From Ministeria vibrans ATCC 50519 (taxonomy: Eukaryota > Protista > Filasterea), in assembly GCA_943704425.1 (NCBI GenBank), contig CALSCP010000942.1:1-36560 (forward strand): a DNA stretch of 36,560 nt, in the 5' to 3' direction. Shown here piece by piece: positions 919 to 33,170 of this stretch; within the stretch, counting starts at the first letter, position 1, and every line of letters begins with the position of its first letter. The translations under genes and the position numbers were made by a program. The notes beneath the pieces were generated by a model. The model made no database searches, was not told the origin of the DNA, and was given only the letters and a program-made list of their open reading frames with translations.

Positions 919-3900
919 ATGGCTTCATTCGTCATTGCCGCCCTTGGCGCCCTCGTGGGCGAGGCGCTTGCCTCGGGCAACACCACAGCACCACCGGATC
1001 ACGGGGGTGGCGTTCACATTGCCAAAATTGAGGTGAGCCATTCGCATATAACTCTGTTCGTTATGGCCTGACTCCCTCTGCGCGCTTGTCTGCCGCCGCC
1101 TCCCCTTCCCAGTGGGAGCATGTCAAAACACCCTTCCTGGTAACCGTCTTTCTGGTCGTGGCGGTCTTTGCGCGCATCAGTATGAGATCTCATTGAGCCA
1201 ATCGAGAGAAAAGTGCACTGACCCTGTCCGATAGTTTACCATCGCCCTGGACGCATCACGGAGCGATTTCCCGAGTCGTGCGTCATCATCTTACTGGGCG
1301 TGATTGTGGGCCTTCTTGTGTGGGCCGTCGACAGTCGCAGTGACGTGAAATTCGATGTGGACACATTCTTTCTGTACATTCTGCCTCCCATCATATTCGA
1401 AGCGGGCTTCTTCGTCAACAACAAACGCTTCTTCAGCAACATTGGCGCTATTCTCCTCTTTGCCATTCTCGGCACCCTCATTAACACCTTTCTTATTGGC
1501 GGTGCGCTCTACGGTCTCGCTCAGGCCAACATGTTCGGCTTCAGTCTCACCTTTGTCGAGTCGTGTGTGTTCAGCTCGCTCATTAGTGCAGTCGATCCGG
1601 TAAAACGCACAGTCCGTCAAGAGCAGCCGTGACTGTAATGTTGTGTTACATGCAGGTGGCAGTGCTGGCAGTGTTTGAGGAAGTCCATGTGGACGCGACG
1701 CTTCACGTGATTGTGTTGGGAGAGTCCATTTTAAATGGTACACTCGCTCACATTTGCAAGTCTCTCCCTTTCTTATGTGTATTGTTTCTCGTAGATGCTG
1801 TTTCTGTGGTTCTCTATCGTACCTTTGTAGCGTTTACTGCTCAACCGGAAATCACTGGAACTGACGTGGGAAAAGTAAGAGAGAGAGCGAGCGAGATAGA
1901 TTGAGAATCAATGGAATGTGTCTGATTGTGTGTGATAAATTGATAGGGAGTTGCCAGTTTTTTTGTGGTTGGAATCTGTGGAACACTGATTGGTGTTATT
2001 ATTGCGCTATTGGGAGCATTTACAACAAGATTTACACAGCATGTGCCAGGTGAGACAGTTTGAGAGACTTGGTTAAGCATTGCACGAGAGTCAAAGTGAG
2101 AGTTACAGAAAAAGAGTGACGAGTCACAGTGTCATAAGAGTGAGAGTTGCTGTAAGTGAGTGAGACATCAGAGTAAGTATGATTTTATTGGGCGACAGTG
2201 AGTGAGCGAAAACACCATCAGAGTGAGCAATCATGGGCATGAGAGAGACGCAATGAGACTCTTTCAGTGACAAGCACACTCACATCATTTCTGCTCTTTT
2301 TTCATATTATAGTTATGGAACCCATGTTGATTCTCTCATTCGGTACCACACACAGAGTAAAACTCGTCCTTCTCACCCACACATTCTTCTTGTTTTATGC
2401 AGGCTACTTGGCCTATCTTTGTGCGGAAGTTTTTGAGCTGTCGGGCATTCTTTCGATTCTTTTTGCCGCAATGATCCTTCGACATTATTCTCAGCATAAC
2501 ATACAACCGGAGAGTCTCACTGCGACCAGCTACAGTGTCAAAATGCTCGCGTAAGTTCTTAATTATTATCAAATCAATATTCATATTCACGTTGTAAATC
2601 ATTTTCTGCTATAGAATGATCACCGAGTCCATTGTGTTTATGTTTCTGGGTATTTCCCTCGTGAGCGAGGACCACGCGTGGAATGGGCTCTTCATTGTCT
2701 TTACCCTCATTTTCTGCTTTGTCTTTCGCGTTTTCAGTATGACTGAGCATAAATTAAAGGTGAATGGCTCAAGGCGATTTTGTTTTGTTGTAGGCACAAT
2801 TATTCTAACGGCAATTGCGAATCGTTTTCGAGTGGTGAAGGTATGAGAATGTTTAAAACAAAACAATAATTATTAGGAAACTTAACAATTGATGTAGATT
2901 GACCGCTCAGATCAATTTGTGCTCTCGTATGGGGGCTTGCGAGGAGCGGTTGCGTTTTCGCTTGCGTTTGTGTTGGACGAGCAGTCTATTCCTGCTCGAA
3001 ATATCTTTGTCTCGACGACCTTGGTCGTCATTCTCTTTACTGTGTTCATTCAGGTAGCTCTCACAATATTTTTTACATCGACCTCACTCCTGCTTCTCTT
3101 TTAGGGTACGACTATTCGCCCCTTATTGGATCTGCTGAATATCAAACGAGAGAGTGAACATCACGAGTCACTCGCTGAGAGAATTCTCCCTAAGGTATCT
3201 CATATGATATATTCTGATTTTTTGACTCACTCGTTTTGCTTTTTCGCTCTGTTATGCTCAGCCGTTACATCACGTCACAGCTGCTATGAATGCGCTCTAT
3301 GGAAACACCACTGCAAACAAAGGAATTCTTGTACATCGCGCTCATTATGTATGATTATTCTCACTGGTTTCCTTGATTTTTAGACTTGGTTTCGACGAAT
3401 TGACTCAAAGTACCTTAAACCCATATTGGAAAAGAGAGTTGTCACCGAATCAGATCAGCTGATGAGCAAATTGGATGAGCTGCTTCACCAGTGAGAACCG
3501 CACAACACGCACCTTCACAATCACTCACGCTCCTTCTTATTCCTTCAACACTTTGTGCAGGCAAATGATGAGTGACATTAAAGCGAGTCATTCAGTGGGC
3601 AAATTTCCTGCAGGACTCTCAGTTGAACAATCCCATGCAATCCGAAGGTATAATGAAGACATTTCGTTTATGATAATAATTGTATCCTCTCTTTTTGTTT
3701 TTTTTTTGTTGTTTTTTTTTTGTAGGAGTGTCAACGCACAATCGCACTCAGTGGAAGAGACAGTTCGAAACCGATCCGATCAAACGTAAAAGCTAACAAT
3801 AATCTCTCCTCTTTATTTGTTCTTTCTTTCTTTTTCTCTTTTCAGCACTTTGTTTCTCTCTCCCTTCTCTCCCTCCTCTCTCTCTATCACTTTGTTTTTC

Positions 3901-6722
3901 TCTCCCTCCTCTCTCTCTATCACTTTGTTTCTCTCCCTCCTCTCCCTCCTCTCTCTCTCTCTATCGCTTTGTTTCTTTCTTTTTTTCTTCTCGATGACTG
4001 ACAATCTCTTTCTCACTCACGCACTTATGCTACTAGACTGACCGATCGAACGTACTCAATGCAAACACTGGACGCGCACGAACAAGCGGCGGCATCCGAA
4101 TCAGCACACTTGCTCTCCGCATCGCATGCGGGCCACCATGCACTCGCTGCACGCGCACTCAGTCACAATCGTGAGGCTGTGTCGCATTTCCACAGTGGTC
4201 AGAGTCAGAGCAAGGGTGGGAATGACATGGAAATGAGTAGCAGCGGTGTGAGAGCTTCTTCTGCCTCAATGGTTCGCAACGTCTCGGCGTTGGATCTGCT
4301 GCTTTTGGCCGCGCCTAAACGGGACACGTTCGTTGATGTGGAGAGTGCTGAAGGAGGTTCCATGGATGGCACTGCTGTTGACCTCACTGATGAAATCACG
4401 GCTGACCGTTCCTCTACCACCACCACCGCCGCCGCCGCTGTTCCCTCTGCTTCTTCTGAACTCTCTGATGACCATGCATTCCGCCTCGGTCGCAAACGCT
4501 ATGCTCTCACGCGTCCCGCAGAGTCGCAACAGGAACGGCGCGACAACAACACTCTCCAGCTGGTCACCATGCTCATGCACCGTCAGCGTCTTGCCCAGCA
4601 GCAGCAGACAGTGCTTGCTCCTGACCGCTCCTCCTACAACACATCCCACCACCAGCAAGCAGGCACCTCATCCACATCGACATCGTCGTCGCACCACCAT
4701 CATCATCACGCATCGTCGGCTGCTTCAGCTGCCGGTGTCGCTGCCGATGAGAAACGTCGTCACTTTGCCTCCAGCAAACACCATCGGCCTTCCTCAACAG
4801 CCTCCCATCGTAACTCCTCCATTGCCTCAAACACCTCCACAGACCACTCGGTTGCCATCAACGCCTCAACGGCCACTCCTACTCCCGCAACGACCCCGGC
4901 CATCACACCCGCCTTCACTCCCATTGGTCCCTCAACCAATGTCAGCGGCGAGACCACTCGCTCCGTGTCTCCCTCTGTCACATCTGCCTCTGACCTTTCC
5001 ACCGTCGCCTCTTTTGCCGCTCTTGTCCCTCCATCCACGACCACCGAACTCATTCCTTCTTCATCCGCTTCCTCTATGATTTCCGACCGTCGCCCCAACC
5101 TCTCTCCCCTCATTCTCCCTCCTTCCAGCACACCTATCGACTCCAACTCTCGCATCGCTTCACCACAGCCTCCTCCCTCCGCGACCCCTTCCCTCGAAAG
5201 AAGCGAGAAGAAACGTCACCACCACCACCACCACCACCACCACCATCGCCATCATGACCAGTCCAAAAGACACAGTGCTCAGCCTCCCCCGTCAACAACA
5301 AACCCCTCCTCCTCCTCCTCGGCTGCCGCACGCGACAATGCCATCCCCAGCCGTCACTTGCATGCTGCTCTCACACCCGTCGACGCTGCGCCACTCGATG
5401 AGCTTTCCGCCCCTTCGTCAACAACATCCGTCGCTGTTGACGAGGTCGTGCGCTCCTCACGAGCTCACAACGTCCACAACACCTCCTCAGGGCACCACCA
5501 CCACAGCAGCAGCAGCAGCAGTCGCCACCGACCCCAGAGTGCCGTACCACTCAGCTCCAGTAACGCTCTCTCAAGCTTTACCAGCACCGACGGAGCAGTG
5601 TCCCCCACGCTGGCTAGTCGCCACCTGCACGCTGCGCCCGCCCTTGACTCAGCCCCCCTCGACGAGCTTCTCCACTTGGTGCACGATGTCCAGGCACTCG
5701 TCATTGACGAAGCAGTGCGCTCCACCCCCGCACGCAACATCAACTACGGTGCACCCGCTCACCACCACCACAGCGGCAGCAGCAGCGCAGAGCACTCGTC
5801 GCAACGCCACCACAGCCGCCACCGACCACAGAGTGCCATGCCCCTCGGTGCTTCCACCTCCTCCCACCAGCAAGACTATCATCATCACCACCACAGCGGC
5901 AACAGCAGCAGCAGTGCTCGTCACCATCAGCACCGCGACTCCAGCTTAAGCAATTCCTCAGCCATGGGCACTGCGACCACTTCCACAGCCACAGCCGAGG
6001 CCGCCTCTTCGTCCCATCACCACCATCATCACCATCATCACCGCTCTCGCTCCCGCTCCCGCCCTAACTCCTCACTCGACACCCCTACGTCCACAGCCCC
6101 CTTTAGCTCTACACTGGGGCCTCTCTCTGCCAACTCCTCTGCTGCCAACACCACCAGCAACTCCCCAGTGCCAGAGTCATCCAGTCCTGACACTTCAAAT
6201 CCAATGGCTCCCCCGTTGACCACTCCGACATCTTCCACCTCCACCAAGCGCACCTCAGACATGCCTCGTCCCGCCTCCATCAATGCCAATCTCGCCGACC
6301 ATCACCTTACCAGCGACGAGCTCCGTGCCGCCGGCCACGCCGCCCTCCTCTCGCACACCCTTGCCTCCGACGACACTGTCAAAAATCGTCTCCTCTCCGG
6401 CGTGTTCCGCTTTGGCCGCAGCAACCGTCCCGGTTCCTTCACCAACCCGCGTACTGGCTCACTCCGCAGCTCCACCATCGACACGTCTACCCTCAGCGAC
6501 CACCGCGCGAAGAAGTCCGGGCTCCGCCCCATCTCAACGACCTCAAGCACCTCCTCCTCTACCGCGCCCGCCCCCTCTGCCCTCCGTCGCTCCTCTTCCT
6601 CTGGCCGTCTTGCCGGTCGCTCCTCTAGCCTCGTACCTCCCCAACCAACTCAAGCCCCTCCTGCCGACGCAAAACCGCGCACTCCTCCTCCGTCACCCGT
6701 CAACATTGAAGAGAGACTGTAG
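919..6722 (+). CDS. Na+/H+ exchanger (CPA1/SLC9A family, plasma-membrane NHE-like), multi-exon, with ~890-aa low-complexity last exon
   Basis: In-frame GT-AG spliced exons give NHE motifs: [118 protein letters not shown]. Last exon 4037-6722; AATAAA right after the stop. Confidence 0.95.
3813..3990. repeat. Intronic (CT)n compound repeat with ctatcactttgtttc units
   Basis: Reverse complement of the unit at 1-260, inside NHE intron 3786-4036. Confidence 0.85.
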
Positions 6723-6820
6723 CAATAAAAAATCTCTCTCAAGTTCAGTACAAATTACAAAAAACTTGAATACTTTTTTTTCCTTTTTCTTTCTTTCTCT
6801 CTCTCTCTCTCTCTCTTCAC

Positions 6821-9800
6821 ATGCAAACTCTTGCCGTGCGATGGGCCAACTCACACTTAGCCCGTGCAAATGAAAAGACAATCGACAGCATTGCAGAGGA
6901 TCTGCGCGACGGATTGCTTCTCTTCAGACTTGTTCTTCTCGTACGAACACACATAATAAGAAAAATATTATCGCACAATGTTAACACCATTCGCCCAAAA
7001 AGGTCACTGAAGAGCCGCGCGATGCGCCCGACACGGGAGATGAACGCCTAAACACCCTTGGGAGGCTGCAGGCAGTCATCGACCGGGCGTTCCGCGAGCA
7101 GGGCCCGCGCGCACGAATCCTCCCGCAGAGCATCATCGATGGAAGCGAGACGGAGACGCACGAGCTGCTCGCGCGCCTCATGGACCTCGAGATTGAGCTC
7201 ACCGTCGATGGCTCGCTGCACGGACGCGAAGCGCTCCTCGCCTGGGCGCAGCGCTCCATCAGTGGCTCTGCGTCTGCTAATATGCCATCGCCGCTGAGCC
7301 TCGCTGGCTCATTCGCCTCGGGCGAAGCCTTTTGCACTCTCCTCGCCGCCCACACGCTGCTCCCCGGCTACGATGCGCGAGTCGTCAAACACCAGAGTGC
7401 TGCAGACAACATTCAACTTGTCCTCAAGGTATTTATAATTATGATTTATGCGCTCTGTTTCACACTCCCCCCTCTCCCCCGTGCTCTGCAACCCGCTTTC
7501 GTCACGCGCAGTCGACAATGCCGCATGCGTTCCTCACGGCCGACGACTTTGAGGATGACTTTCAAAGGGCAACATTGGCTCTGCTGGTGTCGGTGCAGCG
7601 GCTGGCTCTGCACCGGACCAGGGCAGCCGAGGCGGGTGCGCGGCTGGTGCGCATGTGCACGGCAATCAAGGAGACCAACGACATGCAGTGTGAGTACGTC
7701 GAGCGTGTCTCTGACTTGCTCCGCTGGATCCACTTCGCCTCTGCCAAGCTCAGCGACACTCCACGGGCCTCCACCGACACTGAGCTGCAACACATGCACG
7801 GCAACCTCACAACATTCCGCACATCTGAAAAGAACCCCAAGGTAGAATCATACAGAGTATACACGACACTGCACTTCATTGTTAATATTGTTGGTTTGTA
7901 GTTTGCTCAAAAGGTGGACATTGAAGCAATGTTCCTTGCTCTTCAGACCAAACTCCGGGCCACCAATCGTCCGTTGTTTGTGCCACCGCCTGGCAAATCG
8001 CTCGACGACCTTGTCACGGCATGGAGAGCTCTTGAGCAGAGCGAAAAGACCCTCGAGGATGACATTCAACAGCAACGTGAGCGCTTGCGCAAACTCGAAG
8101 AGACCGCCACACGATTCCGACGCAAGGTTGGTCTGCGACTCCGTTGGCTTGAAGACATCAAGGTATAACATTATTATTCTCTTAATAACACGATAATATT
8201 AATAATAATAATAATTATCTAATAAAATAATATGCATTTAGACCCAATTGATGTTCATGGACTTTGAGCTGAGTGCGTCGTCCCTGGATGCGGCCCGCAA
8301 GAAGCAAGAGGCGTTTGAAGTGGACGTCTTGACACACCAGGAGCGCATTGACACACTGCTCATGACAGCGGAGGAACTTGCCGAGGAAAACTACAAGGAC
8401 GACTCTGGCGAAGTACGTCTTAATGCTGAGATTGTCGAGGAGGAGTGGGGTTCCGTGCTGTTGTTGGTTCAAGAGCGTCGCAAAAAGGTAAACAAACAAT
8501 AATAATAATAATAAATTATTATTATTATAATTATTATTATTATTATTATTATTATTATTTTTATTATAATCTTACTTTTGTAGATCGACTCTTTGTTCGG
8601 TGTGCTGAAAGTGTACCAGGACATCAGTGCGGCGGATCAGGCCATTTGGGAGACATCATTGGTGACATGTTCGGATCATTTGGGTATCGGCGTACAGGGT
8701 GTCCACGACCAACGTGCAAAGCTGGCTGTCGCCCAGCAACAACTCGACAAGTGTGTATTGCAGGTGACGGCGATTGAGCGTGTCGCCGAGCGCTTTCGAG
8801 CGGAGAATCACTCTGAGTCGTCGGTCGTGACAGATCGACACGAGTCGCTGGCTCGACAGCTTCAGGGTGCTCTCAGTGCCGCCCAACGTCGCGACACTGC
8901 TTTACGCGAGCGCCTTGAGGTGGAGCAGATCGTGCAGGATCTCGAAGAGGAGGACACCATTCTCGTGGAGTTTGATCGCATTCTCGCGTCGTCGCGAGAA
9001 CTTGGCAAGGACCTCACGGGCGTGCACAGCCTTGTCGAGCGACACGAGCAGCTCACGAGCTCGCTGGGCGCTCACGAAGTGCGTTTGCTAGACATGCAAC
9101 GGCGTGCGGCGACGCTGCACGCCGACGAACAGCGCGAAGATGTCGGCAATGCACTCGCGGCCATCAATCGGCATTGGCAAGCGATCAAGGAGGCCATGAC
9201 GGCCCGTCGGGATGCCCTTGCAGAGTCTCGTGCTGCCCACGTGTACGCTGTTGAGGTGGACGAAACGCTGACGCTTGCGAGCGAAAAAGCCGTTGTGTTT
9301 GCGAGCGAACTCGTCGGTGGCGACTACGACTCAACGACTGCACTGCTCAAACGCCACGACGCTGTGCTTGACGATCTTCGTGCTCTTGAGCAACACATTG
9401 AGGCCCAGCAAGAGCAAGGCGATGCGCTCAAACGCACGACGGTTCATCGTGAACTGGCGTGTGCTCTCATCAGCGAGAAACAGTCACTCCTACAGAGTCG
9501 CATGGGGGAACTGCAGACGCAAGCAGACGATCGCAAACGTCGCCTGACGCGCCAGCTCTCCTTTCACCAGTACCACGCAGATCTTGCCGATGTGGAGTCG
9601 TGGATGATGGGCTGTGAGGAGACAGTGAGCAAGCATGAGCAGTTGTTGAGCCATCGCAAGAACAAAAAAAAACCCAAGACGAAGATGAATCAAGAGAAGA
9701 TGAAGGATGGCATTGATGCTACCGAAGTCAAAGACGACGATGACGACGACGACGACACGGATGACGACGACGACGATAATGATGATGATGACGACGAAGA

Positions 9801-12800
9801 GGACACAGCCGTGGACAAGAGTGGCAAGAATGCGTCAGAGTTACCGGCACGTCTGCACAAACGGTACGGTGATCTGCAACGCGAGCTGAAGGCACACGAA
9901 CGACGAGTGCCCGACGTGTGCCAGGCGGCCGACGCGCTCATTGGCGAGGCGCATCCTGAAAGCAATGCGATTGCAAGTGAGCGCGACACACTCTTCAATC
10001 GATGGCGCAAACTCGAGGCGCTCGTGGCCAAACGTGTGCGCGTGGTGGGGGCCGCACAGGAAGTGCGTGCACACGAGGAAAGCCTCGATGCCATTGTGGC
10101 GCTTATGGAAATGAAAAAGGCACCACTGATGCGCGAAGAGACGGGCAAGGATGTTGAGGAGGTGGAGAGCTTCCAGCGACAATGTGACGCGGCGACGCGC
10201 GACCTGGAGACGTTAGCACGTCGACTGGTCGAGAAGAATGACGAGACGGAGCGACTCGCTGCAGCACATCCCGTCCTTGCCAAAGACTTGCGTGCAAAAC
10301 AGCGTGTGACAGTGCGCAAGCTGGAGCAGCTGACGCGACGAGTGGTGGATCGCAAGAAACGACTCAATCGTGCCTTTGAGCACTTTGCCTTTACCACACT
10401 GCTCAAGGAGACGACAACGGAACTCGGGGCCATTCAACAGCTCATGATCACCGAAGAGCTGCCACGCAACCTGATCAAGGCGGAGGCGGACATGAGCAAC
10501 CACAAGGCACTGCGTGAGCGCCTGAAACGCGCGGGCGAGCGCTGCAAAATGTGTCTTGAGTCGGGATCGTCGCTTGTGTCCGGCAAAGACTCAGTCTCGT
10601 CGCTCGTGTCGTCGCAGCTCAAGAAGCTCATGGTCCGTAAGGATCGCCTTGACGGCCACTGGGAACTGCGACGCGTCCAACTGATGACGACGCGTGACAT
10701 GCTCTCGTTCTACCGTGACGCGGACCAGGCCGACTCGTGGATGGCCAGCGGTGAGGCGCTGCTTAGCGACAACGACTGTGGCGATTCGTACTTTGCAGCC
10801 GAGTCGCTTTTGCGCAAGTACAACGAGTTTATGCGCACCATGCCGGCCGCGTCGGACACCATCGCCGCAGTGGATGCGTTTGCGCGTGGCATTGGTGATG
10901 CAGTGGAGGCGAGTGATCGTGAGAGAGTGCTTGGGCGCATTCGCCATGTGATGGAGCGCTGGGACAAGTTTGTGTCGCGCGCCATGGTGCGCGGTCGGGC
11001 ACTGGAGGCGAGCATGAACCTGCACAAGTTTTATCGACAGGTCCAGGAGGCGTCCATGTGGCTGGAGACACGTCGTAAGTACGCCGAGGACGACTCGTTC
11101 AAGCAGAGCCTCTCGCATATGGACAGCAAGCGTCGCAAGCACCAGGAGATCACTGCCGAAATCCAAGTACGACAGTCCCAGCTTGCCCTTGTCCTTGAAG
11201 ATGGTCAGGCTCTCATTTCGGGCGCCACTCTGCCCGGTGGTGATGACTCGGCTAAAATGACAAAGAGTGCTGCGTCGCCGACGCCGCCGTTGCCTCACCC
11301 CGAAGCTGACACTGTGCGACTTCGCATCCGACACGTCCGCGATGGGCTTGAGGCATTGATGCACGCCATGAACACCAAGGAGACCGCCCTGAACGACTTG
11401 CACAGTGTCGCGGCACTACACCGCGAGACGGACACGCTCGAGGATTGGGCACAGGGTGCGCTGGCACTGCTTCAATCGCTGGACACGAGCAGAGACCTTG
11501 CTAGTGTACAGGCACAGTGGCGCAAACTGCATGTGATTGTTGACGATGTGGCCAAGCATCGCGATGCTTTTCCGGCCATTGCGGCCACGGCACAAGCACT
11601 GCTGGACCGCGACTGTACCGGCGCGGAACTCGTCAAGGCCAAAAAGGCGTCGCTCCTGGAGCTGCAGGCGCAACTGAATCACGCTGTGGAGTCGCAGCGA
11701 GTGGTGCTGGTGGAGGCCGAGAAGTTTTACACACTCACCCGCGATGCGGACGAACTGTCGTCGTGGCTGCACGATCACAGTGTGATCACGGAGCAGCTGG
11801 TGGCGTCGCCGGACCTGTCGAGTGATCGCATTGAAACGCTAATCAAGAAGTGTGCCAAGCATCGCGATGGAATGTCGGCGAACCGCGAGCGAGTTCACGC
11901 ACTTGAGGGCTCCGCCAAGGCACTCTCTTTTGACAAGCACCCACGCGCCGATGAGGCTCGCCAACTCATTGGGCAGCTGCGCGATGAATGGGATAATGTG
12001 CAGGCGGGCATTGACGCGAAACAGGTGGCGCTGGCGGAGGCGCTGAAGGTTCAGGATTTCTATCGAGAGACTGACGAGGTGACGCTGTGGATGCGTGACA
12101 AGCTTGAGGACATGGAGAATAATGTGGTGCCGGGCCATGACCTGCAACTGGTGCAGACAATGCAGCGGCACGCCGAAGTGCTTAAGGCGGACGTGGGCCG
12201 TGTGCGTCTCAAGGTGACAGCGCTCGAGCGTGAAGCAGCACGCTTTGCCGAGAGCCACGAGGACCACCGAGAGAGGATTGAGGAGCGACGTGTAGGAGCA
12301 GTGAATGCACTGCATGCGCTTGTGATTGCACTTTCCGAGCATGGTGGCCAGCTGCAGGCGGCTCTTGACTATCAGGGTTTTCTGACCAGCGTGCGCGAGT
12401 CACTTTCGTGGGTGGGCGACATGCAGCGCAAGTTTCACTCGGACGACATTGGGTCGGACTTGGCTACGGCCGAGGCACTCAGCGCACAACATTCGCTGGA
12501 TGGGCGCACCGTCGAGGAGTACAGCGAGAGCAAGGTGGGCTTTGTCGAGGAGGTGGGCGAGTCGCTGCTACAGGCAGCGCATCCGTCGCGCGCTGAGATT
12601 GTCGAGAACTTGGGGCTGCTCAAGGCGGAAGTGGCGACAACACGCGCGCTCTGGCGTCAGCGTAGCGCTCGTCTTGAACTGCACTGTGAAGAGCTTGACT
12701 TTGACGGTGAGAAGCAGAAAATCCAAGCGTGGTACCAGGGTGCACGCGAGACGATTGGGGCGGGATCGACACTTGAGGAGCTGTCGCACGGACAGGGCAA

Positions 12801-15800
12801 GACTCACACGAAGCGCTTTGATGAACTTGTGCAGGCGCAGACGAATCAGTCAACACACGTTGCGCGCTTCCAGCGGTACTGTGCGCGTGTTTTAGATGCC
12901 TACAAAAGGTCATTGGTCGAGGTGCAGTCGGAGGAGAAGGAGGCGGCGGCGGCGAAGGAGAAGAAGACGAAAAAGAAGAAGAATGACGTCGAGGTGGTGG
13001 TGGAAGAGCAAGAGGAGGCAGTGGCAGCAGAGGGAGTCGAGGAAGAGTTTGATTTTTCATCGGATGGCGGAGCAATGAGTGAGCTTGACGAGGAGGATGC
13101 GTCGTTGAAGAGCGGATCGAAGAAGAAGAGTGAAGCAGCCGCGGAGGAGGCGGAGCATTGCAAGAAGAGTCAGGCGGAACAACAAGACGAAGACGAGGGG
13201 GAAGAGGAACTTGCAGATGACGCAGCGGCGGATGCACGAGCTGAAAAACTCAAGGCGAAGGCGCAGGAGGGACGTGACAATGACGAACGCGTTGTGCAAC
13301 TGTCGGTCATTATGGCGGAGAGTGGTTCGCGTGAGGCTGCGCGCGCGTTTGCCGAACATGTCCAGACGAGCCTCGATTCGATTTTGGCCGAGTGGACGGT
13401 CGTGCGTGAGTTGGTCGCGACGCACGGCAAACGTGTCGAGAATTATGTGAATGTCCATCGACTCTTGCGACTCACCGAAGAGGTACACTTTTTGTATTGA
13501 TGATGAGAACTATTAATTTGAATGGAATGTCTCTCTCTTTTCTTGTGTAGGCGACGGGTTGGATTGAAGACCATTTGACGAACTTGGAGAAGGACGCGAG
13601 CAAAGCGGGTCTGGTGACGGAGTGGGGCAACACACCCGAGCTGGTGATGCATGTGCAGAAGCATGCAGCGCTGATGGACGCTATTGAGACCCAACGAGCA
13701 CAGATTGAAGGAAATGTGATGCGGGGATTGGCTGAGGCTGGGATCCATGTGGAGAGGCAGAGCACTGACACCGACACAGAGAGGGTCGAGGAGAATCAAG
13801 TGAATGTGCGAATGGCGTCGCGTGGGGAAGGGACATTGGAGCGAGTGCGTGCGTTGCCGCACTTGTGGAAACGATTGTGTGAGCGTGCTAGCGAGTTGGA
13901 TCGGCGACTGCGCGAAGCGACTGAGCTGCGCAAGCACAATGCGGGCACTGACGAACTTGAAATGTGGATTCAGCAGAAGAAACCAACGCTCGTGTCGACG
14001 GCCGTCGCCGTGGCCACCACCACCATGGCGGGCTCGACGTTGACCACGACCACGCTGAGTTTGCCGCAGGTGCAGGCGCAGCTGCGGAACCACGCAGTGG
14101 TCGAGACGGACATTGAGTGGCGTGGGGAGTCGGTAGCGGCTGCACGCGACGAGGCTCGTCGGATGGTGGCGGCAGAGCATCGCGACGCCAGTGCGATTCA
14201 CGCACGCACCGACAGCATTGTGCGCGAGTACGAAGAGATGAAGGCACTGGCTGCGGAGCGACGCGAGGCACTTGAGGGTGCTCTGGCGCTGTGTCTGTTC
14301 TTTCGCGATGTGCGCGACGAAGAGCAGTGGATTGAGGAAAAGCTTCAGTTGGCAACTGCGGTGGACACGGGTCAGGGACTCATGAGTGTGCAGAATCTGC
14401 AGAAGCAACTGCGTGTGTTGGTGGCGCAGCTTGCGGCCCACGAGCCCATGGTGCACGCGGTGGAGGAGCGACGAGCGGCGGTGCTGGCTAAGGCAACGTC
14501 GGACGCCGAACGAGAGGTGGTGGTCAGGCGACTGGACGAACTGCGTGGGTCATGGTTGCGTCTGCAAGATGCAGTGAAGGCGCGGCAGGATCTGCTGACA
14601 CAGGCCGATGCGTACTTTGCGTGGCGTGCCGAGGTGGACAAGCTGTCGCAGTGGGCAATGGAGACGCGAGCGGTGCTGGAGTCGGAGGAATACGGGGACT
14701 CGCTCTTTACGACCGGCGCGCTGCTGAAGCGGCACGCGGATTTTGAGGTTGAGTTTGCACAGCGACGACGTCAGCTGGTAGCATCGATTGGAACGGGACG
14801 CGAAATGGTGTCAACAGGACATTTTCGTGAGGATGTTATTATTGAGCAGCTGGAGCAAGTGGGTGAGGAGGTGCACTCACTGAGTGAGCTGCGTCTGTTC
14901 CGGCAGAGCCGACTGGAGGATCGTCGTGCTCTTCATGAGTTTATACGTGATGTAGATGCGCTTGAGGCATGGACGCGAGAACAGCGTGAGGCGGCGTCGG
15001 GTGCACTCAGTGGGTCTATTGGCACGAGCATTGAGGAGATTGTGCGTCAGCAGAAGAGCCAAGAAATGTTGTTGGGTGTGTTGCAGTCGAATCGGGGGCG
15101 AGTGGAGCAGATTGAACGAGACGGAGCAGCACTGGTGGAACGACTGCGCGACGACGTCGGTGAAAATGAGAATGGGGATGAGAATGAGGAGGCAAATGAA
15201 GACTCTGAGGTAGGTATGATTGAGCGGCACATGGCGCACGCGCAGTCGCTGTGGCGGTCGGCTGTGGACGCGGCCGAGTCGTACATGGCCCGGCTAAGCG
15301 AGGTCAAAGAGGAGCGCGAGCGGGTGCTGGAGCTGCAAGGGCTGTTTGCGCGCGGTGCGGCTGAGCTGAGCAACTGGTTGCAGGCGGGTGAGGAGGACTT
15401 GACCGATCCTATTGTGGTGAAGAGTGTCGCAGCCCTGGCGGAGATTCACGATGGACTCGACGACTATGTTGACGCAGTGGAGGCCAAGGAGGCGCTTTTA
15501 AACAAGCTGCGTGAGTACGATGCGAGCGTACGTGCGTCGCAACAAAGGCGAAAAGGTGAGGCAATAGCGATGGAGGAAGGACCCGACAACGACAACGACA
15601 GCGACGATGCTAGTGATGAGAGTAGTGATGTAAACCCTTTGACACGGCACACACTGGCGACGCTCGAGATGCGCTGGGAGGGAGTGCGACAACTGATGGA
15701 CGAGCGACGGGCACTGTTGGATCGTGAGCAGCGGCGCCAAGAGGACCACGAGCGACGTCGAAGCGAGTACCGTGTGGAGGCAGAGACTCTATCGCAGCTG

Positions 15801-16964
15801 TGCGCGACCATTCGTAGCGACCTGGCTGTGCCGCTGGGGTCGCTTGAGAGCCAGCGGGAGTGTGTGGAGCGCGTGATGGCGACATTACGACACCGGCGGG
15901 GTGATTTGGATCGACTGAGACGACGCTCGCTGGCGCTGGTGGGTGCTGGGGTGCACTTGGACGTGGGCGGGGCGAGTGAGCAGCAGACGGAGACGGTTGC
16001 GTCGTTGACACAGCAGTGGGTGCAGTTGGAGGAGTTGGCGGGTCGCATGGAGATCAACATTGGGAAGATGATGCGTCAGCGCGCTGCCTTGGGGGTATCG
16101 GCGAGTCAGCTGGAGGAGTACGGGCGACAGTTTGCGGCGTACGATGGGCAGCACAAGGGATATTTGGAGTACGATGAGTTTGTGGCGTTTCTCGAGGCGC
16201 TTGGAGAGAGGCCCGACGACGAATCGGCTATGGACGTGAGCGATGTGCTGTGCACGGTGGACGTGGCGGGTCTGGGGCGTGTGAGCCACGGCGACTTTGT
16301 AGCGTTTATGGTGGCGCGCGAGTTGCGAGCGGAGAATCAACCAGAGCGCATGTTGGAGGCGTTTGGGGTGCTAAGTGGCGGTGGGGTTGCACGAGCGGTG
16401 GACGTGCGGGTGCTCGAGGAGACGCTGTCTCCTGAGTTGGCCAAATTTTGTCGAGATCGCATGGACGAGGAGGGTGACGGAGGGCGTCTGAATGTGGCGG
16501 GTTTTGCCGAGGCAGTGTATGGGGGAGGGCGGACACGCGCGATGCGCGTTCAGGATGCAGTGGTGGTGCAGCGACAGAAACGGCGGGACGAGCAGCAGAC
16601 GAGCGAATGGGAGGGCGAGCGACAACGCACTCGTGTGGACGCTGAGCGACGCGCGAGTCTGGTGAGTCTGACACGGTCATCGTCGTCGTCCTTGGCGTCA
16701 CTCCCTGGTGGCCATGGTGGGCGAGCGCGAGTGTCGCGTGGCGACGGACTGGCCGAGGCGCGTCTCAAGGTGGCGCGGCGCGTGAGTGCCATTCGCCGCG
16801 ACGAGTACGTGTCCATTGCGGAGATGCGGTCGCGCCAGCTGGACCAGTGGAGCGAGCGCGAGCGGGAGTATCGGGCGGGAGTTGAAGAGCGCATGCGTTC
16901 ACGGGATTCGTCGGCGAGTTTGCGTGAGCGGACCCGGAAGAAGTTTTGGGATGTAAAGCAGTGA
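6821..16964 (+). CDS. Spectrin-superfamily protein, ~3200 aa: tandem CH domains, ~22 spectrin repeats, C-terminal EF-hand region and Arg-rich tail
   Basis: Seven exons joined in frame (e.g. 6821-6940, 7003-7428, ...8584-13482, 13551-16964). CH1 VRWANSHL..DLRDGLLL, CH2 GREALLAWAQ..SFASGEAFCTLL, repeat 1/2 LQTKLRATNRPLFVPPPGK, many spectrin W/H/L signatures, EF-hand-like FAAYDGQHKGYLEYDEF and DVAGLGRVSHGDFVAFM. Confidence 0.93.
8497..8570. repeat. Intronic (AAT)n/(TTA)n trinucleotide repeat, partly self-complementary
   Basis: aataataat... directly followed by attattatt... in a spectrin intron. Confidence 0.85.
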
Positions 16965-17259
16965 AGCGTATTTATTTAGTATTATCTAACACAGTAAACA
17001 CACCGAGTTGTCAACCGCCCGTGTTCCACACACAGAGACTGCGTTAAAGACCACAGTCAAGAGTTCTGATAGAGTTGATGGCAGAAGGCTCAAGTCTAAT
17101 AGCGGTTGAAGAAGGAACACGCTTGAATATAGCATGTTTCACTTTTTTCAGTGTATCACCGATCAATCAGATCAATCATTAATAATTATTTCAATTAAAA
17201 CTATCATTACCACTTTATTTTAATATTTTTCTTTTCTCCTTCCTTTTGCGACTTGATCT

Positions 17260-18681
17260 ATGACTCACGGCGGTGGACATCACGGCGGCGGCGGCGGCGG
17301 CGGCGGCCATAGCGGGGGCAGCCACGGCGGCGGATTTCACCACCACCACCAGCACCACCGACACCACCACCACCGCTCCAACGTGGTCGTCGTGGGTGGG
17401 GGGCCGCGCTGGGGGGCCAGGACGGCCGTGGGCGTCGGCTGCTGCGCCTGCTGCTGCTGTAGGTGCTGCTCCTGCGCCTGTGCGTCCTTCACTCTTCTTG
17501 GTCTCCTCTTCCTGACCATGTCCGTCGCTCTATGTGCCATTTTCCTTCCCACCTACGATGTCAACTACTCCATGGCCCCCTCCGAGCAGCGCTTGCTCCA
17601 TTTACCCACTGAATTCTTCGGTACAGCTTTTTGGGAAGTCACCCAACTTTTATTTTTTCTGTTTTTCCCGTTGTCGAAACTTTCCCGCTTCTGCATCTTC
17701 CTCTGCCTCTCCCTCTACGCGGTCGGCGCATGTCCCTTCTTTGCATGAGATGTAACACTCACACGCTTGCACCTCTCGGTAGAGTCCTACACCACCTCGA
17801 GCGAGGATCCGCGCACCGTCCTCTATGCGTTTGACGAGAGACCGCCGCTGACGGAGCGCCAGCACTTCCAGACGTCCTGGTCCAAGGACCTCTCTGGCGA
17901 AGAGTATCAGTACGACCAGTTCTATCTGCTTGACGGCTCGACGGTGAGCCCCGTCATTTGCGTCGACAGCTGCACGCCAACGCCCTGCACGTCCACCGTC
18001 GTCTTGTACGTCTTTGACAGCACCGACACCTTCGAGTCGTGGAAGGACTACGACGACGACACCTACTTCTACACGTCGACATATGGTTCGGGTTGCCACA
18101 CGCCCGTCGTTGAGCTTGACAACGGCAGTTCTGACTACTACTTCGTCGTGTACAACAGCCAACGATCAGTGCGCGTCAAGACGAGCGCACAGTTCAATGT
18201 CACACGCGCTCTCTACGACACATCCTCCGCCACTCAGACCTGCTCCAACGCCACACGCTGCTCCGTCACCCTTGATTTTGCCTCGAACGCAGTCGCCCTA
18301 ATCGCCTCACCGCCATCGTCCAACCCCGACACAACCACACGCGTCCGGTGGTACCCCACGTCGCGGGGCTGGTTTATCGGCGTCCTCTTCGCCTCCATTA
18401 CCGGCTTCATCCTCTTCCTCTCCCTTCTCACCTACTGCTTCTGCCGCACCAGCCACCGCCACACCACTCCTAAACCCCTCTCGGAGACCCAATCCCTTCT
18501 ACATCATCCGCCTCCGCCCCCCTTGAGCACACCTCCCGTCCCCTCCACCCTTCCTCCTCCGCCCCCAATGGGTTCCCCCACCTACCATCCCTATCCCAAC
18601 AGCAGCAACGGCAATTTTGAGCCTCCTCCCTCTTATGACTCTGTTATTCCCTCTTCTCCCAATGACTCTTCTTTTGCCTAA
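17260..18681 (+). CDS. Two-TM protein with an APD1-4-like (DUF4792/DUF4793) luminal region, Gly/His/Cys-rich N-terminus and Pro-rich C-tail with PPPSY
   Basis: Exons 17260-17620 and 17783-18681 join in frame (FF-E-SYTTS). Motifs MAPSEQRLL..TEFF, VLYAFDERPPL, FYLLDGSTV, SSDYYFVVYN, FNVTRALYD, CSNATRCSVTL resemble the plant APD ligase luminal region (recalled). TMs at LLGLLFL.. and WFIGVLF... Confidence 0.7.
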
Positions 18682-26400: not shown

Positions 26401-28334
26401 TACAACGACAGAAGCGGGCACAAACAGGGCCACTCAGTTCCTTCCCTCCTCAACGACATCATCCCCTTCTACTACTTCTACGGCTGCCACTACGATTCCT
26501 GCGACGTCCACGACGCTTCCTCCGCAGATGCTCGATGAGTGGGACTCGCTCAATCTCGAGGAGAAGGATGCGCTTTTGCGTGCCGAGTGGGAGAAGCTCC
26601 AGCGAAAGTATCGCGTCAAAACACACTCGGGTGACCTGGAAAAGTTCTCTTGGTCCGATCCCTTCCAACGGCTCATCCACGTAACCATTTTTTCGTTACA
26701 TACCGCTTGATTATCATTAATTTTGTTTTTGTGCATATAGGGTGTGGATTTGCCTGCGTGTCCTTGTGAAAAGTGCAGCGAACTCTCTGCCGAGGGTCTT
26801 GGTGTGACTGCGGGCGCTCACGCCGAGTTGTCCAGTCTGGTGCGCGAGAGACTCATTGCAACGGGAATTGCAGATGCCATGCCGCTCGCCAGCGACATGT
26901 GCATGGATGTGCCTCCGTGCGACTGTGAAGATTGTCTTCCCGGGCGCTACCCGCATGCCTCGGCGACGCCCCTTGACGGCTACGATGCAGAGCCAGACGC
27001 TGCAACCGCCACCATCGGCAGCACAACTACGACCAACACCGCGGCTGTTGTTGGGTCCACATCTGCTTTTGCATCCGATAGTGCTTCAGTGCCGAGCTAC
27101 GATCCGTCGTGTCCACTCTGCGAACCTTCAAGTGACGGTGCGACAGCTGCAGCTCATGGCGGGTCAACGACACTTGCTAATTCGCATTTGTATTCCCGGG
27201 CTGCACCTCATACGCACGACCATGGCAAACACTCGAGATCGCTGACGCCGAAGCAGCGACTGCAACACAATCAACTTCACTTGGCACAACAGAAGCAAAT
27301 TCTCGAGCAACAACACGAGGTTTTGAAACAGAAACAGCAACAGCTGCAGGAGCAACAGCAGAAGCAACAGCAGCTGCTGCAGCAACAGCACATGCAGCAG
27401 CAATACCATCATCCCGCTGACCCTAACGCTGCCGAGTCTGCGTTTGATCGCCTTCCACCGGGTGGTGGCGCGAGGGGAGGGACCGGTGGTGGTGGTGGTG
27501 GGCAGTTACCGCCCCATGGGAGCTCTGGAGGAGGTGGTGGAGGCAACAAAAGTGCACCGCCGCCGTTGAGCACACCACTGAACCGCAAGCTGACGGCACG
27601 CGATCGACTGCGACTCAAGTTCAACCAGAAGCAGCAGGAGAAGGACACCGGTGTGGGTGGCGAGTGGGGAAACGAGGAGGGCACAGGCGAGGGAAAGGAA
27701 GTGACGGGCGATGCGAGTCTGGAGGACCTGGTGTCGTTCATTGAGGGTGGCAAGAAGTCGGAAGGCGTGGCGCAGACCAAGGCGGCTAAGAAAGCACGGC
27801 AGAAGCAGCGCAAGGCGGAGGAGAAGGCACGTCGTGAGGAGGAGGAGCGGGAACGCGCGGCGGAGCGGGAGGCGGTTGCGGCGCGAGAGCGGGAGGCACG
27901 CGAGAAGGAGCTTGTACGACAGCAAGAAGAGGCACTTGAGCGGGACCGGAAGGAGAAGGAGAAGGAAAAGGAAAAGAGCAGTAAGAAGGGTAAGAAGAAC
28001 AAGGGGAAGCAGCAGGAGAAGAAGGAGGTCAAGGGGGTGACGGGCAGCAACAAGGTGGTAGATGAGAAGAGCGGCAGTGCACGAAAGGAGGAGGAGAAGA
28101 AGCAGCAAGGGAGGAAGGAAGTTGAAGCGAGCGATGCTGTAGCAAAGAATGGAGATGAGAGAGAACGACGCGATGGCGGAGCGGAAGCAGAAGAAGAGGA
28201 AGACGAAGGCGACTTTGATTTTGATGACGATGATGAGTTGGAGGAGTTTAAGCGCTTTTGCTTTCGCGATGAGTCCGTTTCGGTGGGAGAGCGCAAGAAG
28301 GTGCTCATTGATGTATCGCGTTTTACCCTCAAAG

Positions 28335-28342
<8 letters not shown>
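23470..28342 (+). CDS. FAM193: FAM193-family protein, multi-exon, low-complexity
   Basis: C-terminus DDDDELEEFKRFCFRDESVSVGERKKVLIDVSRFTLKAK* matches the FAM193 C-terminal motif (EVEYFKRFCLDS...rq.l..nw.nF.LKK, recalled). Also LFVCLKCRKLIEEDD, DASLEDLVSFIEG, KAAKKARQKQRK, CPCEKC and CDCEDC. Exon boundaries are partly inferred. Confidence 0.85.
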
Positions 28343-30984: not shown

Positions 30985-33170
30985 TCACTCGTCAAACTCA
31001 CTGCAAAACGAAGTGTGTCGCCGCTCGAGCAGCGCAATGCGGTCGTTGAGGCGCTGGTGTTCTTCCAAGAGGCGTTGCATGACACGATGATCGGGGGACA
31101 ACCACCCACTCAGTGCAGGACTGCCCGTTCCAATGGCTGTGCTGTTGACGGAGCGACCGCGACTGTGCAGCCGGAGACGCCTCAAGGGCGTCAACACTGA
31201 CGCCTGGCTGTTGTTGTTGTTGTTGTTGTCGTTGCTGTTGTTGTTGCTGTTGCTGCTGCCGTTCCCATGCTGATGTTGCTCTCGCGGCGGTTGATGTAAA
31301 GCGTGCTTCCTTGATACTGATCCAGGTGACTGTGATACCGACTCCATTAATGAGAGTAGCTCAGGCGACAATGGCAATATCTTGAGCCCGCCCTCTTCCC
31401 TTACACTCTCGTCCATTCCCCCCTCAACTTCAACTTCGGTGTCTTCTTTTTCTTCTTCTTCTTCTCTTTCTTCTTCTTCTTCTTCTTCTTCTTCTTCTTC
31501 TTCTTTTTCTTCTTCTTTCTCTTTGTCTACACCGCCCTTTCCTCCTCCGGCGTGGTCCCAACGGTTCTGTTTTTCCGCCAAATCACCGCGCAACAACTCC
31601 CGACGGCTCTCTCTTCCATTCCACTGGCCATTCTCGCATCCCTCGCCACTTTCATCGTCATCTTCAATCAGGCTCAGTGTTAGTTGCTCACGCTCCCCCA
31701 CCGCAGCCAAAAGCTGAGACACCGGTGAGTGTGTGGCTCGATAGTACTTTTCCATCATGACTGATGCGCTGCAACAACAACAAAATCAATGCAATGCAGA
31801 GGACGCCATAAAAATGACATTATTAGAAAAGAGTCTATGTAACACATATTACACACTGTAATGCAGTCCTGTGCATGAAATCAGTAAATTGCATGTGACA
31901 GCGCAAATTTGTAGACTCCAACATTTCAAAAAATTCAAAAAAAAAAAAGAGACAAAAGTGAGTTAAGTACCTGCCAGTACAGTGCGCTGATGCCGGGACG
32001 CGACGCAGCGGCGTCAACATGCTTGATTCGTATTGTTCGTTCCACGGAGAGTGGCTCTCACTCGTCGACAGGCGTCTCTTTGAGGTACTCTACTTAAGAC
32101 ACTCCAATTCAGAACTTCATCACCTTTCCTCCCTTTACTCTACTTCAATGCGATCAAGCGCCGATGCTATCCGGCCCATATGAAATGCAGCCGTAGTTTT
32201 CCAATCATTTGGTAGCCTAGACATAGGATATGATAATAATGATAAATAAATTCAAATGATTGCAGATTGATCAGTTACATGATTGAAGTCGTAGAAGTAT
32301 TGTACTGATCTGCAATCGATATTTCTGCTTCACATTTGTCGTTCTGCCATAACTCATACTGCTCTACTGAGAGCTTGTGCAGTTTCCACACACTGGACAC
32401 CTCTATGAGGCTGTGTGCTTCCGATCTTCCCAGGGGCCCATGTGGTCACAAGAACAATCCTGCTCTGCCAGTTTGACTTGTCTCACCGCCACACTCAGCC
32501 AACCTGGAAACCTCGCCTTTACGAAGCAAACCCATACGCTAGAGCATCATTTATTGACTCTTGATCGGTTTCATCACTCAACTCATTGCTCTCAAATTCT
32601 CAATGGAGTCTCAATGAAACTTCTTCTCGTCGATCTTTTATGTCGCAATAAATAATCCCAAGCTCAAAATTGAAAAATCAGTTTTTCTTTCAATCCTTTA
32701 GTGAAAAACTCCTTGTACCCCTTCCATTGGGTAAGATACCACTCACACCTGCATCTTCTTCAATTCTCCACGCGTGGATTGAAACCATTCTCAGCAAAAA
32801 AAAAAAAAAAGCTGCGGTTTNNNNNNNNNNNNNNNNNNNNNNNNNNNNNNNNNNNNNNNNNNNNNNNNNNNNNNNNNNNNNNNNNNNNNNNNNNNNNNNN
32901 NNNNNNNNNNNNNNNNNNNNNNNNNNNNNNNNNCGGCTTTTTTTTTTTTTTTTCGATTCCAAAACCGCATTTACGTGATCGACACGATCAAACAAGCGCA
33001 GAGCTCGTCCTCCCTTCAGTTTTGGGCACAGCATAGTAGTACACAAGCCCACTGTACTCTGGTCACAAAAGACAACAAGCCCACACTGCGCCGTTCTTGG
33101 AATGAGCCACGTCCCCATTTGTTCCTGAAGACTTTGCGGGAAAGAAAAATGTTCGAATACTGTCCCACAT
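30985..33170 (-). CDS. Multi-exon protein of unknown function (acidic tract, C-terminal coiled coil), interrupted by an assembly gap
   Basis: Phase-consistent splicing: ..WFQSTRGELKKMQ|RMGLLRKGEVSRLAECG|EVSSVWKLHKLSVEQYELWQ..SIM|LPNDWKTT..RIE|STSKRRL..CTG|SASVMMEKYY...QRLLEEHQRLNDRIALLERR..DE*. The 5' exons (MWDSIRTFFFP..) are less certain. Confidence 0.55.

Follow-up and report, generated by a model that had tools for sequence, protein, structure and literature searches.

According to textbooks and reviews, the spectrins arose when an alpha-actinin became elongated and its long chain was afterwards divided into alpha and beta. Alpha-actinin carries an actin-binding domain (ABD), four repeats and EF-hands on one chain, which pairs as an antiparallel homodimer. 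Alpha-spectrin (about 2,400 amino acids, in animals and choanoflagellates) has no ABD, and carries a mid-rod SH3 domain and an N-terminal partial repeat that serves tetramer formation. Beta-spectrin has a 17-repeat rod with ankyrin-binding repeats 14-15, a partial last repeat and a C-terminal PH domain. Here we describe a gene of the filasterean Ministeria vibrans (ATCC 50519) that places tandem CH domains, a long rod of spectrin repeats and an EF-hand module on one chain. It occupies positions 6821-16964 of the plus strand of contig CALSCP010000942.1 (assembly GCA_943704425.1), and the 36,560 nucleotides (nt) of that contig are the window analysed. We consider it probable that the locus is a transcribed single-chain gene of the spectrin superfamily, that its family retains the pre-split architecture, and that this copy is an old, fast-evolving paralogue whose product would act as an antiparallel actin cross-linker.

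The literature provides a hypothesis into which such a gene could fit. A 2022 survey found alpha- and beta-spectrin only out to the choanoflagellates, and proposed an ancestral CH-repeat-EF spectrin that later split (PMC9145010). The M. vibrans genome was published in 2022 together with those of three other protists (PMC9492541). Aggregation RNA-seq of the species followed in 2025/2026, with 'spectrin homologues' reported as up-regulated during aggregation and as having an 'urfilozoan' origin, in an account from which their architecture is absent (PMC13366479). In the literature that we searched, coverage of which was partial, we came across no account of a single-chain spectrin in any protist, and the unsplit intermediate is hypothetical there. 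Nor does spectrin feature in the main text of Sebe-Pedros 2013 or Suga 2013.

The gene consists of seven exons and six introns and encodes 3,231 amino acids (aa), summed over the exon translations. From the N- to the C-terminus these comprise the tandem CH domains, 22 spectrin repeats (labelled from R1), the EF-hand module and an Arg/Ser-rich tail. All six introns are short and AT-rich, run from GT to AG and lie in phase 0. The parts of the gene are as follows.

6821-6940, plus strand: exon 1, with the ATG and the first part of CH1; Pfam CH match, aligns with alpha-actinin ABD residues 29-58
6941-7002, plus strand: intron 1, predicted; upstream of the stretch read in RNA
7003-7428, plus strand: exon 2, with the remainder of CH1 and most of CH2; Pfam CH match below cut-off, weak match in the PDB
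7429-7511, plus strand: intron 2, predicted; also upstream of the stretch read in RNA
7512-7841, plus strand: exon 3, with the end of CH2, the neck and helix A of repeat 1; aligns with actinin residues 267-294
7842-7901, plus strand: intron 3, removed in an RNA contig of run X6
7902-8162, plus strand: exon 4, with helices B-C of repeat 1, of the type found as R1 in alpha-actinin and beta-spectrin by Smith-Waterman scores
8163-8241, plus strand: intron 4, removed in RNA of runs X6 and X18
8242-8487, plus strand: exon 5, with repeat 2; Pfam Spectrin, E 7.9e-8
8488-8583, plus strand: intron 5, removed in RNA of run X6
8584-13482, plus strand: exon 6, with repeats 3 to 15 and the beginning of the next unit; Pfam Spectrin, E 2.5e-111
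13483-13550, plus strand: intron 6 (68 nt, phase 0, GT..AG), linking the two large open reading frames (ORFs); skipped in RNA of runs X6 and X14
13551-16964, plus strand: exon 7, which carries the seven final repeats, then the EF-hand module, tail and stop codon; matches to Pfam Spectrin (E 1.4e-52) and EF-hand_7

Transcription and splicing were examined by aligning the Logan contigs of four runs (X6, X14 and X18 from RNA, X2 from DNA) to positions 7600-13599. A contig of the DNA run spans 7600-8487 unspliced and thus keeps introns 3 and 4. In RNA run X6 the locus is represented by two contigs of 2,627 and 7,156 nt, which overlap by 27 nt (9766-9792) within a (GAC)n tract. The parts of these contigs that lie beyond the aligned stretch measure 668 nt upstream and 3,390 nt downstream. 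The former length fits exons 1-3 plus about 34 nt of 5' untranslated region, which would place the transcript start near 6787, and the latter fits exon 7 followed by some 25 nt beyond the stop codon, which would place the transcript end near 16989. Introns 1 and 2 are predicted because of their splice signals and phase, the length of the X6 contig, and the collinearity of exons 1-3 with canonical ABDs. Four differences between strains or runs fall within the gene, three of them synonymous and one a change from Thr to Ser. The locus is confirmed as one expressed gene that encodes a single chain. The initial annotation had described one spliced ORF with two CH domains, about 22 repeats and EF-hands, and the exon structure, the RNA contigs, Pfam and the repeat model described below all agree with that description. 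Each of the 14 peptide strings cited there (14/14) is also present at its expected place.

Some features of the assemblies deserve mention alongside the gene model. The (GAC)n or acidic tracts at 9733-9808 and 12951-12983 draw many unrelated contigs and false long joints in DNA and RNA assemblies alike. Two such long joints, from 9761-9790 to 12954-12961 and from 8215 to 12993, were rejected as low-complexity artefacts because their sides are short (23-27 nt), splice ends are absent and they occur in DNA run X2 as well. A run of nine A's at 9664-9672 has one extra A in the X6 RNA contig that is absent from the X2 DNA. Slippage or a homopolymer error may account for the difference; a genuine extra A would cause a frameshift.

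Domain searches with this protein were run exon by exon, using Pfam at E ≤ 0.01 for all exons and also at E ≤ 1 for the last 304 aa. The CH family is matched by exon 1 (E 2.6e-6, 28 bits against a cut-off of 26) and, under the gathering score, by exon 2 (E 1.1e-4, 22.8 bits). Exon 2 also matches an alpha-actinin ABD weakly in the PDB (E 0.009) and is 28% identical over 120 columns to the ABD of an actinin from Codosiga. Exons 1-3 together are collinear with canonical ABDs at 28-38% identity, with full length and motif order kept. Spectrin repeats are matched in exons 4-7, most strongly in exon 6 (11 stretches), and EF-hand_7 is matched in exon 7 at 30.2 bits against a cut-off of 30. No Pfam match to SH3, PH, WW, ZZ, plakin, GAS2 or KASH was obtained with any exon at the first threshold, and WW, ZZ, plakin, SH3, GAS2 and KASH are absent from the last 304 aa at the second as well. 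The hallmarks of dystrophin and utrophin (WW, ZZ), of spectraplakins (plakin/SH3, GAS2) and of nesprins (KASH) are therefore absent from the exons of this gene, and the earlier statement that SH3, PH, WW/ZZ and plakin/GAS2 domains are missing holds for every exon.

Given that the summed scores of repeat proteins are not a measure of orthology, we typed the rod repeat by repeat. A hidden Markov model (HMM) built from repeats of the same genome segmented the protein into 22 units, and each was compared by the Smith-Waterman method with every repeat of a set of reference proteins: three alpha-spectrins (fish, clam and the choanoflagellate Salpingoeca infusionum), lamprey beta-spectrin, one beta-heavy spectrin and two alpha-actinins. 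R1 scores 125 with actinin R1, the top match of all for this repeat, 112 with beta R1 and 93 with beta-heavy R1, whereas R2 scores best with beta R2 (103, against 85 for the top alpha repeat). R3-R5 are of alpha type, with R4 matching alpha 8/16 and R5 alpha 3. R6-R11 then follow alpha 2, 3, 4, 5, 6 and 7 in order (equivalently 10-15), R13-R14 follow alpha 3 and 4, and R16-R18 follow alpha 7/15, 8/16 and 17. R20 matches alpha 19 (110/105/101) above actinin R3 (89), and R21 matches alpha 20 (102/84/84). Throughout the rod units alpha types score highest, except for a near tie at R8 (beta16 85, alpha4 83) and two untypable units. Nine of 17 neighbouring repeat pairs stand in alpha order, a number that 20,000 shuffles never reached. 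By this typing the rod contains no succession of beta-type units, and only R1-R2 are beta-like.

Searches with the large exons point in the same direction. The top PDB match is alpha-I spectrin (8iah_8) for both exon 6 (E 9.5e-103, residues 64-891 against 746-1579) and exon 7 (E 1.5e-119, residues 221-662 against 1689-2109), with beta-spectrin second in each case. Protein database searches with exon 6 retrieve animal alpha-spectrins at about 25% identity, with E down to 1.7e-155, and a HMMER search with exon 7 gave nothing above 31% identity. Length-limited searches with exon 6 and with the ORF of the paralogue C1674 (see below), from which the organism's own records were excluded, returned only animal alpha- and beta-spectrins. 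No protist record was among these matches and none combined CH with EFhand_Ca_insen (PF08726), a result that is not evidence of absence.

These data separate the two halves of the idea, advanced in the initial annotation, that the protein is a chimera of beta- and alpha-spectrin. The alpha half stands, as the rod from about repeat 6 and the C-terminus do follow alpha-spectrin order by both per-repeat typing and best PDB matches. The beta half does not, since nothing specific to beta-spectrin was found. Repeats 1-5 had been assigned to beta-spectrin, but R1 leans to actinin, only R2 leans to beta and R3-R5 are of alpha type. The N-terminal motifs cited as diagnostic of beta-spectrin belong to an R1 common to alpha-actinin and beta-spectrin. 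Likewise, the acidic tract that had been taken as the point of a switch from beta to alpha is a plain insertion within R6.

Several further elements of the protein can be located on the DNA.

9652-9813, plus strand: a Lys-rich run followed by a poly-Asp insertion in repeat 6, which splits the HMM match of R6
12910-13299, plus strand: a Lys/Glu-rich insertion of about 130 aa in repeat 15, seen in the translation; the HMM match is absent across it
15327-16085, plus strand: the last two repeats (labelled R20-R21), matching alpha 19-20 and collinear with the last units of the paralogues C738, C1674 and C572
16068-16580, plus strand: EF-hand module EF1-4 with degenerate calcium loops, by alignment to paralogues and actinin
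16581-16961, plus strand: an Arg/Ser-rich C-terminal extension of about 127 aa in the translation, with no family match in Pfam

The (GAC)n tract within the R6 insertion interrupts both DNA and RNA assemblies, and R10 carries a short Pro-rich insertion. EF1-4 are 33-35% identical to the complete EF1-4 of the paralogues and of Codosiga actinin (35% for the latter). No canonical calcium loop is present among the four: liganding positions 3 and 5 are Gln and Lys in loop 1, and Ala and Leu in loop 2. Because the loops are degenerate, calcium control of the protein appears unlikely.

The gene does not stand alone in its genome. We searched all 29.7 Mb (2,860 contigs) with fish alpha-spectrin and lamprey beta-spectrin as queries, and with Pfam on long ORFs. 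About 150 spectrin-repeat matches are distributed across several contigs, and CH domains adjoin several of them. At least three further genes (C572, C1674 and C1345) encode a single CH-repeat-EF chain with an ABD and an alpha-type EF end each, and two more loci are related.

C572: ABD 58% identical to that of beta-spectrin; about 50 repeats; EF-hands with PF08726; 34% identity to alpha-spectrin 1310-2409
C1674: ABD present; 27 repeats; EF-hands with PF08726
C1345: ABD present; few recognisable repeats; EF-hands; both ends in one 4,363-aa ORF
C738: ABD not detected; 18 repeats; EF-hands with PF08726; SH3 absent; a gap of N's lies just upstream
C596: ABD 61% identical to that of beta-spectrin; at least 16 repeats; C-terminus off the contig

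The rods of these paralogues are built of iterated alpha2-alpha7 hexads that end in alpha 19-20, and R16-R21 of our gene line up in order with the six final units of C1674 and C572. Paralogue ABDs are 58-61% identical to that of beta-spectrin, and identity to fish alpha-spectrin is 34-40% for the paralogues against 28% for the gene described here, which is the most diverged member of several unsplit spectrin-like genes in this genome. Pfam found no SH3 domain in the paralogue ORFs. No PH domain was found on the contigs with spectrin repeats, and the genome's PH_9 matches lie on contigs without them.

A few observations on individual paralogues may be useful to those who wish to work with them. 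Within C572:23629-41639 two blocks have identical repeat scores, which may indicate near-identical copies or an assembly duplication, and an overlap of two long ORFs at 31923-32022 implies either an intron or a frameshift. Its upstream neighbour is an alpha-actinin-like gene that was left out of the trees described below, being multi-exon and diverged. At C1345:102766-115854 the 4,363-aa ORF has a tandem-CH ABD at residues 18-238, EF-hands at 3711-3841 and about five recognisable repeats, and may be another giant, very diverged CH...EF protein.

Phylogenetic placement was approached from both ends of the protein. An IQ-TREE analysis of the C-terminal module (the last two repeats plus EF-hands, 20 rows) unites our gene with C572, C738 and C1674 at a support of 100/98. 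This set is separate from the clade of choanoflagellate and animal alpha-spectrins (97/96) and also from the alpha-actinins. In a tree of R1-R2, exon 4 of our gene pairs with C1674 (support 91/81, 40% identity), and the pair is placed apart from the clades of beta-spectrins, beta-heavy spectrins and actinins. Neither tree is rooted, and what they exclude is nesting within the crown alpha or beta clades. Both end modules lie outside the alpha, beta and beta-heavy clades of animals and choanoflagellates and beside paralogues of this genome, which disfavours a joining of present-day alpha and beta chains. The initial annotation had left the choice between an unsplit form and a secondary fusion, and the trees are compatible with the former and argue against a recent fusion.

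Because the family branches outside the alpha- and beta-spectrins of choanoflagellates and animals, we propose that it retains the pre-split architecture. On the evidence of sequence, the family is best read as an elongated alpha-actinin or proto-spectrin architecture and not as a fusion of modern chains. The more specific suggestion that the gene and its paralogues are living descendants of the unsplit proto-spectrin itself, formed when an alpha-actinin was elongated by the repeat block now known from alpha-spectrin, is one that we put forward tentatively, as plausible but short of an even chance.

Comparison with the closest described systems brings out both likenesses and differences. Alpha-spectrin, the top database and PDB match for both large exons, shares with it the alpha-type repeats in order, the last repeats resembling alpha 19-20 and the EF module. 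However, our protein begins with a tandem-CH ABD, has neither the mid-rod SH3 nor the N-terminal partial repeat, is only about 25% identical, leaves PF08726 unmatched and falls outside the alpha clade. Beta- and beta-heavy spectrins likewise open with a tandem-CH ABD and then R1-R2 units of matching type, with beta R2 the best match for R2. The distinguishing parts of beta-spectrin's rod and C-terminus (the PH domain, the 17-repeat plan, the ankyrin-binding repeats and the partial last repeat) are all missing, the protein ends in EF-hands instead, and its R1 lies outside the beta and beta-heavy clades. Alpha-actinin has the same single-chain domain order, but four repeats instead of 22. The additional 18 repeats belong to spectrin (alpha) types, and the last two resemble alpha 19-20 more than the actinin R3-R4 to which alpha 19-20 are homologous. 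The closest relatives are the paralogues C572, C1674 and C1345 (also C738 and C596), which share the single-chain plan and collinear last six repeats and differ in having PF08726, a higher identity to animal alpha-spectrin and 27 to about 50 repeats in regular hexads.

A counterpart from elsewhere is P0057 (2,616 aa), a product from the public RNA/DNA run SRR19044621. Its single chain combines two CH domains and 16 repeats with EF-hands and EFhand_Ca_insen; it is placed outside the beta clades and shares only 26% identity with our protein. No introns interrupt its contig of 8,087 nt, and long collinear stretches of the protein align with fish alpha-spectrin at 34% identity and with lamprey beta-spectrin at 31%. 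P0142, from a JGI metagenome, is a shorter CH-repeat-EF protein of 1,486 aa.

Alpha-actinin offers a natural model of how such a single chain could work. In this family the first repeats belong to the type that alpha-actinin and beta-spectrin have in common, and the last two repeats with the EF-hands belong to the type common to alpha-spectrin and alpha-actinin. By analogy with alpha-actinin and with the nucleation site of the spectrin alpha-beta pair, two chains would associate in antiparallel fashion, R1-R2 of one against the last two repeats of the other, so that R20-R21 are presumed to be the self-association site. A spectrin repeat measures about 5 nm, and 22 repeats thus correspond to about 110 nm. 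The homodimer would be a rod of about that length with an actin-binding head at either end, and might cross-link or space cortical actin without calcium control. The further proposal of a membrane-skeleton role finds no support here, as no PH domain and no repeats resembling ankyrin sites were found.

The coding sequence of R1-R2 is split over four exons in our gene and lies in one exon in C1674, and the pairing test was consequently made on C1674. The predicted complex of its R1-R2 with its last two repeats reached an ipSAE of 0.53, against 0.00 for the best of three controls, with at least 90% contact agreement between runs and a partner pLDDT of at least 82. Among solved complexes 51 of 78 attain the pass mark, as do 2 of 108 mismatched pairs, and passes at 0.60 or below comprise only 5 of the 78 solved complexes and all four passing mismatches (of 180). 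A similar complex has already been solved, such that the pass may reflect that likeness only, and the prediction lends weak support to antiparallel pairing.

Despite the arguments in favour of an unsplit, actin-cross-linking chain, a number of points weigh against it. The pairing prediction concerns a paralogue and not the protein itself. The ABD is diverged (28-38% identity) and its CH2 is under the Pfam cut-off, such that actin binding is a prediction only. EFhand_Ca_insen has no match in the C-terminus even at E ≤ 1. The exact position of the gene in the trees is unsure, given a very long branch (3.99 changes per column in the C-terminal tree) and odd composition. As the trees are unrooted, they fit equally a family that is sister to the alpha-spectrins and one that lies outside alpha-actinins and spectrins together. 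Finally, C738 and C596 (C738:82625-90265 and C596:1-6625) may represent a split pair, one alpha-like and the other beta-like, in the same genome.

Four other explanations must be weighed against the proposed one. The least likely, to which we assign almost no chance, is that two or more adjacent genes have been taken as one. The whole locus is in no single RNA contig, and the two contigs that represent it meet in a repeat, as might be expected of such an artefact. However, a 27-nt overlap joins these contigs without a gap, no stop codon interrupts the 4.9 kb and 3.4 kb of exons 6 and 7, intron 6 falls within a repeat unit and the splices are in phase. A secondary fusion, in which this lineage joined once-separate genes for alpha- and beta-spectrin head to tail, also seems very unlikely to us. 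An N-terminal ABD with R1-R2 and a C-terminal alpha 19-20 with EF-hands are what a fusion would retain, and R2 does lean to beta2. Yet the parts specific to beta-spectrin are absent (no PH domain on the spectrin contigs, no partial 17th repeat, no run of beta repeats), as are the N-terminal partial repeat and the SH3 domain specific to alpha-spectrin. In addition, both end modules lie outside the crown alpha and beta clades, and the architecture is common to at least four paralogues.

Independent elongation, by which the lineage's own alpha-actinin grew a long rod unrelated to the elongation of spectrin, is improbable, if a little less so than fusion. It would be favoured by the likeness of R1 to actinin R1, by an unrooted tree that need not place the family as sister of the alpha-spectrins, and by the existence of other long CH-repeat-EF proteins, of which P0142 groups with an actinin. 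Against this, internal repeats in alpha order (2-7, 15-17) recur in the gene and in all of its paralogues, which would not be expected from independent duplication, and actinin R3-R4 give lower scores than alpha 19-20 against R20 and R21. The alternative that we take most seriously, while still judging it unlikely, concerns this copy alone: it may have become a long charged scaffold or spacer that does not cross-link actin, with the conserved paralogues doing the spectrin-like work. Such a change of function would be in keeping with the very long branch, the diverged ABD, the degenerate EF loops, the unmatched PF08726, the two charged insertions (about 50 and 130 aa) and the new Arg/Ser-rich tail. 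Nevertheless, the ABD retains its full length and motif order, all 22 repeats (22/22) are recognisable, the 9.7-kb ORF is open and expressed, and strain differences are few and mostly synonymous. We continue to favour a single-chain, actin-cross-linking member of an unsplit family.

Other loci of the genome gave observations that are independent of the spectrin question. Upstream of the gene, one rich in His and Ser codons stops at 6722, and about 100 nt with a (CT)n tract precede the ATG. Downstream are two ORFs.

17767-18681, plus strand: ORF with APD1-4 N and M domains
26744-28342, plus strand: ORF with a weak FAM193_C match (E 7e-5), below cut-off

FAM193_C and APD1-4 are animal-type families in a protist, and the neighbourhood of the gene is holozoan-looking. 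A collagen IV C4 (NC1) domain (E 9.9e-24) is encoded at C372:34129-34714, and the collagen IV C4 domain of M. vibrans has been reported as the sole case outside animals (PMC13366479). The sequencing runs that contain the locus are marine (seawater and algae metagenomes) and include DNA and RNA of 2011, a 2022 study with a second organism and four RNA runs of 2025, which is in keeping with this species. At C2175:25721-27814 there is an intronless cytosolic HSP70 gene, whose product is 70-73% identical to animal HSP70s. It falls in a cluster of at least 90% identity with a sequence from the MMETSP0661 'Alexandrium margalefii' transcriptome, and where aligned it shows 100% identity to the ENA representative of that cluster. 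This sequence match suggests that M. vibrans contaminates the algal culture of Alexandrium margalefii used for MMETSP0661.

For the question of how spectrins originated, the paralogues C572 and C1674 are better material than the gene described here, which is the least informative member of its family. The main contribution of this copy is RNA-backed evidence that the single-chain form exists, together with an example of strong divergence in one copy. If the gene and its paralogues do descend from the unsplit proto-spectrin, the split into alpha and beta chains took place on the stem of choanoflagellates and animals, after the filastereans had branched off, and a culturable protist would show one chain doing the work of the alpha-beta heterodimer. 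An expressed single-chain family in the sister lineage of choanoflagellates and animals would make the split hypothesis testable by phylogeny, biochemistry and cell biology.

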